From Octopus sinensis (lineage: Eukaryota), in contig NC_042997.1 of assembly GCF_006345805.1 (NCBI RefSeq), forward strand, positions 152,272,001-152,336,000: 64,000 nt of DNA. Direction: 5' to 3'. Below, piece after piece: positions 2,834-4,439 of the stretch. Every line of letters starts with the position of its first letter. Within the stretch, counting starts at the first letter, position 1. The notes below the pieces were generated by a model. The model worked only from the letters and a program-made list of their open reading frames with translations, was not told where the DNA came from and did no database searches. The position numbers and the translations under genes were made by a program.

Positions 2834-2962
2834 AAATGTCACAAAATTTATGCCTTCACTGTTACAAAGAAACAATGAAGGAAAGTGATAGTGTATTTCT
2901 GTAGCAACAAACAATTATTTCCAGAGAGAAAAACTCTGGGAGTATTCAGTAGAATGTTGCAA
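2834..2962 (-). ncRNA. Candidate box H/ACA snoRNA, copy A, HSP60 intron 1
   Basis: Hairpin 1 (GCAACA/TGTTGC lower, CCAGAG/CTCTGG upper); H box ACAGAA (2902-2897); hairpin 2 with 11-bp stem CCTTCATTGTT/AACAGTGAAGG; ACA at 2839-2837 plus 3 nt. 129 nt, ending 94 nt before the acceptor. Paralogue at 4311-4439. Confidence 0.75.
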
Positions 2963-3052
2963 TAAATGAAAATCAGAATGTGATTAGTTGAACGTTTATT
3001 ATCACCCAGCTCTGTAATTTAACAAATAGAAGTGTTTAGATTCACACATACG

Positions 3053-3357
3053 TCATCATCATCGTTTAACGTCCGCTTTCCATGCCAGCATGGGTTGGAC
3101 GATTTTGACTAAGGACTAGCGAACCAGATGGCTGCACCAGGCTTCCAATCTTAATCTGGCAGAGTTTCTACAGCTGGATGCCCTACCTAACGCCAACCAC
3201 TCCAAGAGTGTTGTGGGTGCTTTTTACGTGTCACCAGCACGAGGGCCAGTCAGGCGGTACTGGCAATGACCTTGCTCGAATCTTTTTACACATGCCACCA
3301 GCACAGGTGCCAGTAAGGCAATGATGGTAATAATCACGCTTGAATGGTACCTTTTAC
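3053..3357 (-). mobile_element. 3' tail fragment of an RTE-type LINE/SINE family ending in (GAT)n
   Basis: Matches the 3' end of the element at 24510-25390 (...GCATGGAAAGCGGACGTTAAACGATGATGA). Further copies at 7435-7622, 9395-9582 and ~20915-21525. Confidence 0.8.
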
Positions 3358-3790
3358 AAGTAAATACAAGAAACACATTTTTTACTTCATTTCATGGTCA
3401 CTAAAATTTTCACAGTATAAAAGTTCAGTGAGTTAACTTGGTATGAAGAAGAGAAAGACAAGTCTTTATTTCTTCAACGAAAATGTGTGTATGTGTATGT
3501 ATATATACACACACACTCACTCACAAGTGCTACTGGCAACATAGTCTGGTACAACCTACTTATTGCATGATCAGGTTGTCAACAAAGAAAGACCTGTCTG
3601 GTGAGGAGAATTGCAAAAAATTCAATAGCTGGAAAGCAATATCTATTAAAAAAAAGAAACTGATGTACCCAGTGCAGGGTAATATGACTATCAATAACAC
3701 AGTTACTTCAAACTTCCAGTTTGGAATCTGCCATGGCAAAAGAACACTAAGAGTGAAGCAGCCCTTGGCTTTCATTAAAGAAAGCTTGAA

Positions 3791-4010
3791 CCCATTAGCA
3801 TTTAAACAAACCACATCTGGGCCAAATATTCAACCAGTTTTATGCTTAAACTGGCCAGATCTTGCCTCTCACACACACCCAACATTGTTTTTCTAAACAT
3901 AAACAGTCACATAAATAAAATCTGAAAGCTACAAGACAGTACATGTGTAATTCAAACTATCGTGAATATATAAGGATTATAGTTAACAGAATAATCTGAA
4001 TGCTAAAGGG
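3791..4010. mobile_element. TTAA-type MITE (piggyBac-like)
   Basis: CCCATTAGCATT ... AATGCTAAAGGG|TTAA termini; interior matches 16298-16512. Confidence 0.75.
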
Positions 4011-4310
4011 TTAAGAAGGCACCACTGTGTTCACAGCTACACTAGCAGTATAACTGGGCAAGAAGGTGATCTGAGCTCAGTAGCCTTGGAAGGCAGCCAG
4101 ACTAGATCAACTCTTGAACTGCTTCTAAGTGTCTGCAAAGAGAAGACAATACTGACAGTAAATCAGGAGAACTTTGCACCTCCATCAACACCACCAGACC
4201 CTATCCACTCCAAAGACAGTTTGAAGGTGGGCAACAAATGGGTTTTCAGCCACGAAAAGGAGAATATTTACCTACATATATATCCACACACATTTTATGA
4301 AATCACAAAA

Positions 4311-4439
4311 ACATGTCACAAAATTTATGCCTTCACTGTTACAAAGACACAATGAAGGAAAGTGATAGTGTATTTATGTAGCAACAAACAATTATTCCAG
4401 AGAGAAAAACTCAAGAAATATACATAAAAATTGTTGCAA
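4311..4439 (-). ncRNA. Candidate box H/ACA snoRNA, copy B, HSP60 intron 1
   Basis: About 100 nt nearly identical to 2836-2936; H box ACATAA (4379-4374); ACA at 4316-4314; identity with copy A stops 1 nt past the ACA; 129 nt. Confidence 0.72.

Follow-up and report, generated by a model that had tools for sequence, protein, structure and literature searches.

A stretch of 64,000 nucleotides (nt) from Octopus sinensis (assembly GCF_006345805.1, contig NC_042997.1, positions 152,272,001 to 152,336,000; hereafter the window, numbered from its first letter) includes the start of the gene for the chaperonin HSP60. A predicted intron in the 5' untranslated region (5'-UTR) of this gene harbors two similar elements, copy A and copy B, each 129 nt long. 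We conclude that these elements are probably paralogous genes for box H/ACA small nucleolar RNAs (snoRNAs), the 3' pocket of which would direct pseudouridylation of the large-subunit (LSU) ribosomal RNA (rRNA) position equivalent to U3694 of human 28S rRNA. The elements have the hairpin-H-hairpin-ACA anatomy, are conserved in three octopod genomes, and are complementary to a site in LSU rRNA whose numbering is fixed by the surrounding modified positions. The coordinates of all features are collected in Table 1.

Anatomy and boundaries of the two elements

Aligned with each other, copies A and B are identical in 117 of 130 columns (90%), with 98% identity over the 3' 84 nt against about 78%, plus one indel, in the 5' part. 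Bases that tell the copies apart include G versus U in the H box and U versus G in a loop. The similarity starts at UUGCAACA and stops 1 nt past the ACA, and the flanking sequences are unrelated; alignment of the copies together with their flanks thus bears out an earlier sequence-only reading of this DNA, which had described two 129-nt elements in unrelated surroundings whose identity ends 1 nt after a 3' ACA. Searching the window with a 60-nt probe and allowing up to 3 mismatches recovered only these two copies, with 0 expected. Both elements lie in the HSP60 sense orientation within one intron, copy B 1477 nt upstream of copy A, and the 3' end of copy A is located 93 nt upstream of the acceptor of intron 1.

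Copy A is predicted to fold into a hairpin, the box ACAGAA, a second hairpin and the box ACA (z = -3.4). The 5' hairpin consists of a lower stem of 6 base pairs (bp), GCAACA/UGUUGC, and a 6-bp upper stem, CCAGAG/CUCUGG, located 18 nt from the H box. The 3' hairpin has an upper stem of 11 bp (10 bp in copy B), which an internal loop of 9/10 nt separates from a 3-bp lower stem (CAC/GUG); the distance between the upper stem and the ACA is 13 nt. The H box begins one nt after the 5' lower stem, and the ACA directly follows the 3' lower stem. In box H/ACA snoRNAs, which measure about 120-140 nt, the ACA is located 3 nt from the mature 3' end. The sequence-only reading was right about both H boxes, ACAGAA in copy A and ACAUAA in copy B, and partly right in assigning 13 nt to the distance from each upper stem to its box: this spacing holds for the 3' hairpin but not for the 5' hairpin, where the clear stem is 18 nt away and a distance of 13 nt would need a mismatched extension.

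In copy B, the 5' upper stem is interrupted by a U.U mismatch, and the minimum-energy fold of the whole element is not the canonical one, although each half folds canonically on its own. This fold aside, the canonical H/ACA layout was predicted independently in six copies from three octopod genomes. When the six copies were placed on a common structure, 92% of the cells were paired overall, as were 95% of those in the 3' upper stem, where the changes are wobble-compatible or single mismatches.

Conservation in other octopods

Comparison of orthologous introns, which had been proposed as a check on the sequence-only reading, showed that the element is retained in the HSP60 introns of both Octopus bimaculoides and Argonauta hians. 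The O. bimaculoides locus (L123) spans the whole of HSP60 intron 1 and contains both copies at syntenic positions, the orthologue of copy A at L123:2122-2249 (94.6% identity) and that of copy B at L123:3299-3426 (96.9%). The two species differ less in the elements (95-97% identity, hardly any indels) than in the flanking intron (89-93%, many indels). Because both copies are syntenic, the duplication predates the split between O. sinensis and O. bimaculoides. In Argonauta hians (loci L124 and L125), the element is about 80% identical, and the intron is otherwise unalignable except for dispersed repeats resembling short interspersed nuclear elements (SINEs), a second, SNORA20-like element described below, and two very short segments. 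On the minus strand of L124, positions 1-36, at the edge of the locus, hold the beginning of a second copy, UUGCAACGGUAUUAU..., so that this genome probably has two copies as well.

Across the six full copies, both lower stems, the A positions of the H box (ACAGAA, ACAUAA, ACAUUA or ACAUCA), the ACA and the guide strands of the 3' hairpin are invariant. One invariant block of 21 nt, AAUACACUAUCACUUUCCUUC, comprises the hinge, the lower stem and the 5' guide strand, and a further one runs GUGAAGGCAU...UUUUGUGACA (also given as GUGAAGGCAU-AAUUUUGUGACA). The loops, the 5' pocket and all sequence beyond the element vary among copies, and conservation among species and paralogues alike stops 0-1 nt past the ACA. 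The sole substitution in the pocket, an A to U change beside CAU in Argonauta, extends the predicted guide-target duplex from 7+3 to 7+4 pairs.

These comparisons bear on whether both paralogues work. One of them, most likely copy B and in some species copy A, might be a duplicate in slow decay that does not yield a stable RNA, as could be suggested by the U.U mismatch and non-canonical minimum-energy fold of copy B, by a C.U mismatch in the 3' upper stem of copy A in O. bimaculoides, and by the norm of one snoRNA per intron in vertebrates. Yet both copies are kept in synteny in O. bimaculoides, copy B being the better conserved (96.9%); the start of a second copy is present in Argonauta, too (L124:1-36); and the U.U mismatch occurs in three of the four Octopodidae copies and so is apparently tolerated. 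We consider decay of one copy unlikely.

Predicted target in LSU rRNA

The guide pockets were compared with three complete 18S-5.8S-LSU ribosomal DNA (rDNA) units from unrelated eukaryotes, identified by an exact 24-mer search of metagenome contigs. In each of the three units, the top bipartite match of the 3' pocket was GAAUG-[UC]-AAAGUGA, with 7+3 Watson-Crick pairs and no wobbles, which places the predicted target U in the LSU context GAAUG-U-CAAAGUGA. This is exactly the pairing around the U of GAAUG-U-C-AAAGUGA that the sequence-only reading had put forward. Among shuffled or random pockets, only 0.6-1.2% find a Watson-Crick bipartite match of at least 10 bp in about 5.7 kb of rRNA, and the ten pairs of the 3' pocket exceed the experimentally determined minimum of 8 guide-target pairs (PMC6049503).

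The equivalence to human U3694, reached in the sequence-only reading by counting back from the human landmarks Gm3723 and Psi3737, was examined by checking the register against the human modifications in the vicinity (Taoka et al. 2018). With the target U set to 3694, the right base was found in all three rDNA units for Psi3674, Cm3680, Am3697, Am3703, Psi3709, Gm3723, Psi3737, Am3739 and Psi3741/3743/3747, where Psi denotes pseudouridine; Psi3713 fits in unit L048, which carries the human-type U. The statement of that reading that U3694 is pseudouridylated in human likewise proved correct, the site being 100% modified in 28S rRNA (Taoka et al. 2018). The guide assigned to it in human is SNORA27, which is hosted in RPL21. 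In yeast, the corresponding U2211 of 25S rRNA is not known to be modified.

For the 5' pocket, the scan of the same three rDNA units under many apex definitions returned only weak, G-U-rich or structure-inconsistent matches. The loops of the elements contain no CAB box (UGAG).

A true H/ACA RNA could have another role altogether, as an orphan, as a guide for small nuclear RNA (snRNA) or messenger RNA, or in pre-rRNA processing, with the 28S match being non-functional. The 3' arm with its three pairs and the short lower stem would agree with such a role, and the target scan was confined to the rRNAs of three unrelated eukaryotes. Nonetheless, no other position in any of the three rDNA units matches better, the matched site is fully modified in human, and any match of this kind would arise by chance in about 1% of cases. 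The guide strands do not vary, the single change next to them lengthens the duplex, and loops devoid of a CAB box give no pointer to a Cajal-body RNA. All in all, a different role appears very unlikely.

Relation to known snoRNA families

Comparison with Rfam, another check that had been suggested, gave a mixed outcome. At gathering thresholds, no family passes in the entire 64 kb window; under permissive settings, the full-length matches on the sense strand are solely to H/ACA families, namely, SNORA1, SNORA28, ceN84, SCARNA24 and SNORA8. We rejected membership in any of these five, as the matches capture the generic H/ACA shape and the guide sequences mismatch. The best family, SNORA1 (RF00408), scored 34.1 and 31.9 bits (E = 1e-4 to 5e-3), and its alignment spans both hairpins and both boxes of the octopus elements, but the score is less than half of the gathering score of 70, and the pockets of the 3' hairpin read differently (UUAUGCUUC / ACAAUGAGA vs UAUCACUUU / CAUAAAUUUU). 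A resemblance to SNORA1 in the 5' pocket was partial and was dropped, given that octopods do not conserve that pocket. Thus, both elements show the generic H/ACA shape and, judging by these searches, belong to no described family.

The model of SNORA27 (RF00443) gave no match in the 146-nt region searched, even at E <= 10. Human SNORA27 (ACA27) resembles the octopus elements in being a box H/ACA RNA that is intronic in a housekeeping gene and has 28S U3694 among its assigned targets, but its host is RPL21 rather than HSP60, and its second target, 28S-4522, has no counterpart in the octopus element. The relationship would be one of functional equivalence, with the predicted target alone in common and no detectable sequence or profile similarity to indicate shared ancestry.

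Searches for dispersed copies

A covariance model built from the six copies was run against 197 kb of octopod and other mollusc-like sequence, where only the syntenic copies scored, and against the HSP60 loci on 7 further animal contigs (39 kb), where no copy was found. Neither blastn nor a guide-pattern finder nor the covariance model found the element in the loci L121, L122 and L126-L132, which come from other animals and were recognized by exon open reading frame matches. A SINE or a dispersed high-copy repeat, the latter raised by the sequence-only reading itself, receives no support: within the 197 kb, there are no copies beyond the syntenic sites. The SINE-like repeat at 3052-3354, which is located between copies A and B and has inverted copies at 7432-7622 and 9433-9582, shows the opposite behavior, being missing at the matching place in O. 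bimaculoides and having many related copies in the Argonauta loci; in this respect, the elements are unlike a dispersed repeat.

Two further sites were recovered by these tools. The covariance model gave a weak match (20.7 bits, E ~0.08) at 777-897 on the minus strand, in the HSP60 intron between exons 1654-1304 and 693-595; as a further copy, it is without Rfam support and is probably due to chance. A loose setting of the guide-pattern finder picked out a long hairpin with an ACA-like tail at 4650-4722 on the minus strand (L123 ~3640-3709 in O. bimaculoides), about 280 nt upstream of copy B; this hairpin relies on G-U pairing, was not seen in Argonauta, and is probably a chance structure, too.

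A conserved intronic element might also merely look like a snoRNA and instead take part in the control of splicing or transcription, give rise to a microRNA precursor or derive from a mobile element. This possibility draws on the absence of covariation and on the sub-threshold Rfam scores, and we regard it as extremely improbable. Conservation begins exactly at the 5' stem and ends exactly at the ACA tail, and both boxes are correctly placed; the covariance model finds nothing beyond the syntenic sites in 197 kb or in the HSP60 loci of other animals; and the true dispersed SINE-like repeats of this intron behave quite differently.

Proposed function and its weak points

If the elements are H/ACA snoRNA genes, their expression, processing, protein binding and modification activity, which we infer from sequence, would follow the usual course. 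HSP60 intron 1 would be spliced out, dyskerin, Nop10, Nhp2 and Gar1 would assemble on the hairpin-H-hairpin-ACA RNA, and exonucleases would digest the intron as far as the particle, so that an RNA of about 129 nt is left. The 3' pocket would then pair with LSU rRNA through UCACUUU/AAAGUGA and CAU/AUG, keeping the U of GAAUG-U-C unpaired at 14 nt from the ACA, where a distance of about 14-16 nt from the box is typical of the class, and dyskerin would convert this U into pseudouridine, at the position corresponding to human 28S Psi3694, which precedes the first helix-69 pseudouridine by 47 nt. The role of the 5' hairpin would probably be structural alone, as the other half of the particle.

Several observations weigh against this assignment. 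No Rfam family reaches its gathering threshold, as described above, and the stems of the six copies are supported by invariance and not by compensatory base changes; their differences are limited to occasional wobble changes plus three single mismatches. In the 3' upper stem, copy A of O. bimaculoides and the L125 copy of Argonauta each carry a C.U mismatch. The 3' lower stem, at only 3 bp (CAC/GUG), is short for an H/ACA hairpin, and the 3' guide arm contributes only 3 pairs in Octopus. The 5' hairpin combines a non-canonical distance of 18 nt between stem and H box with a variable pocket and no convincing target. The rRNA match was established on the rDNA of other eukaryotes, used as stand-ins for octopod 28S. 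Finally, vertebrate introns normally give one snoRNA each; by this rule, multiple snoRNAs in a single intron are unusual, and small exons that escaped detection may therefore separate the units. Paralogous H/ACA genes are the explanation that we prefer and regard as probable.

The host gene and its putative intron

HSP60 is encoded on the minus strand, with coding exons at 2734-2567, 1654-1304 and 693-595. The first 56 amino acids are identical between the window and O. bimaculoides; a protein search with 200 amino acids of HSP60 returned no close relatives. HSP10 is arranged head-to-head with HSP60 and read from the plus strand; its exon 1 stops directly after the ATG (13071-13073), and later exons follow at 17623-17784, 19168-19254 and 21640-21684. 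HSP10 of the window has 94% identity to the O. bimaculoides protein and 89% to its Argonauta hians counterpart. Between the two genes, the promoter region (12388-13074) contains two perfect trimeric heat-shock elements, at 12732-12744 and 12869-12881.

A donor, GTAAGT, is found on the minus strand at 12393-12388, and an acceptor CAG at 2742-2740 follows a pyrimidine tract, with 5 nt between the end of the acceptor and the ATG at 2734. The sign of the AT skew flips near 12.5-13 kb. Given the placement of the donor, the acceptor, the heat-shock elements and the switch in AT skew, a 5'-UTR intron of HSP60 of about 9.65 kb is the likely host of both elements, and a non-coding HSP60 exon 1 would end at 12394. 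The intron 1 donor and both heat-shock elements are kept in O. bimaculoides. Within the intron, a palindromic (TG)n/(TA)n/(CA)n microsatellite at 3479-3525 produces spurious sub-threshold matches to mir-297 and mir-466 on both strands.

Table 1. Features of the HSP60 locus and of the H/ACA snoRNA candidates (window coordinates)
Feature	Position	Strand	Basis and remarks
Copy A, H/ACA snoRNA candidate, 129 nt	2834..2962	-	Hairpin-H-hairpin-ACA fold; full-length sub-threshold Rfam H/ACA matches; orthologue L123:2122-2249
5' hairpin, copy A	2904..2960	-	Lower stem GCAACA/UGUUGC invariant; pocket and upper stem vary among copies
H box, copy A, ACAGAA	2897..2902	-	In the hinge; fits ANANNA
5' guide strand, 3' pocket, copy A, UCACUUU	2882..2888	-	7 Watson-Crick pairs with LSU AAAGUGA, 3' of the target UC
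3' hairpin upper stem (11 bp) and 7-nt loop, copy A	2853..2881	-	Folding, six-copy alignment
3' guide strand, 3' pocket, copy A, CAU	2850..2852	-	3 pairs with LSU AUG 5' of the target U; starts 13 nt before ACA
ACA box, copy A	2837..2839	-	Invariant in six copies; similarity stops 0-1 nt past it
Copy B, H/ACA snoRNA candidate, 129 nt	4311..4439	-	Repeat family D1/D5; orthologue L123:3299-3426
H box, copy B, ACAUAA	4374..4379	-	Six-copy comparison
5' guide strand, 3' pocket, copy B, UCACUUU	4359..4365	-	Same as copy A
3' guide strand, 3' pocket, copy B, CAU	4327..4329	-	Same as copy A
ACA box, copy B	4314..4316	-	Invariant in six copies
HSP60 exon 2 (first coding exon)	2567..2739	-	ATG at 2734; tblastn
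HSP60 intron 1, putative 5'-UTR intron, ~9.65 kb	2740..12393	-	Placed from donor, acceptor and ATG positions
SNORA20-like H/ACA element, ~90 nt, 3 copies	6848..6936, 8815-8903, 10815-10904	-	Rfam SNORA20 45.9 bits, E = 1e-6, threshold 60

A SNORA20-like element in the same intron

A second H/ACA lineage shares the intron, in the form of a SNORA20-like element that nearly matches the SNORA20 family in its 5' hairpin and pocket strands; its presence adds to the view of the HSP60 intron as a snoRNA host. In the window, it is part of a tandem triplication (~6716-10907) with a unit of about 1.97 kb that carries the SNORA20-like element together with a SINE-like repeat. The unit is single in O. bimaculoides (L123 ~5603-7804), where the element is found at ~7690-7800, and Argonauta has two copies of the element, at L124 7389-7482 and 2917-3002. 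Its stems include one compensatory pair, A-U to G-C. The 5' pocket pairs with GCGUAUA-[UU]-AAA of small-subunit rRNA, and counting the register against Um627, Gm644, Psi649 and Am668 identifies the target as U651 of human 18S rRNA, which is 93% pseudouridine in human (Taoka et al. 2018 list). The 3' half is unusually short, and no clear ACA box can be made out in it.

The arrangement recalls the multi-snoRNA introns and clusters of invertebrates, of which the H/ACA clusters of Drosophila are an example, in that several sense-oriented H/ACA units, including tandem paralogues, occupy one long intron. It differs from them in that the octopod host is a heat-shock-regulated chaperonin gene and not a ribosomal-protein or non-coding host gene.

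Implications

Literature searches turned up no credible HSPD1-hosted snoRNA, in line with the statement in the sequence-only reading that no snoRNA was known from an HSP60 intron. One review table lists SNORD105B with HSPD1 at 19q13.2; this row looks like an error because HSPD1 is on chromosome 2. For cephalopod snoRNAs, the searches returned only the Rfam counts of genome papers.

The gene class itself is ordinary, as is the location of a snoRNA in a housekeeping-gene intron, and the general understanding of snoRNAs is unchanged by this finding. What the two elements appear to represent is a genuine, new, lineage-specific H/ACA snoRNA that Rfam does not recognize. They add a candidate H/ACA snoRNA to an almost unannotated cephalopod set and illustrate how annotation based on Rfam misses such a candidate (34 bits vs 70).

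On a speculative note, to which we attach a small chance, the heat-shock-inducible bidirectional HSP60/HSP10 promoter might drive one intron that yields several H/ACA guides, of which two would act on the 28S Psi3694-equivalent site and one to three on the 18S Psi651-equivalent site, so that heat or mitochondrial stress would raise the guide supply and tune pseudouridylation. All these guides would then come from a single intron, contrary to the rule of one snoRNA per intron in vertebrates.

More generally, our analysis predicts a mollusc counterpart of human 28S Psi3694 whose guide has no detectable similarity to the vertebrate one, and is relevant to the question of how a modification site can outlast the RNA that guides it. 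In octopods, HSP60, a stress-regulated chaperonin gene, would emerge as the host of multiple snoRNAs.

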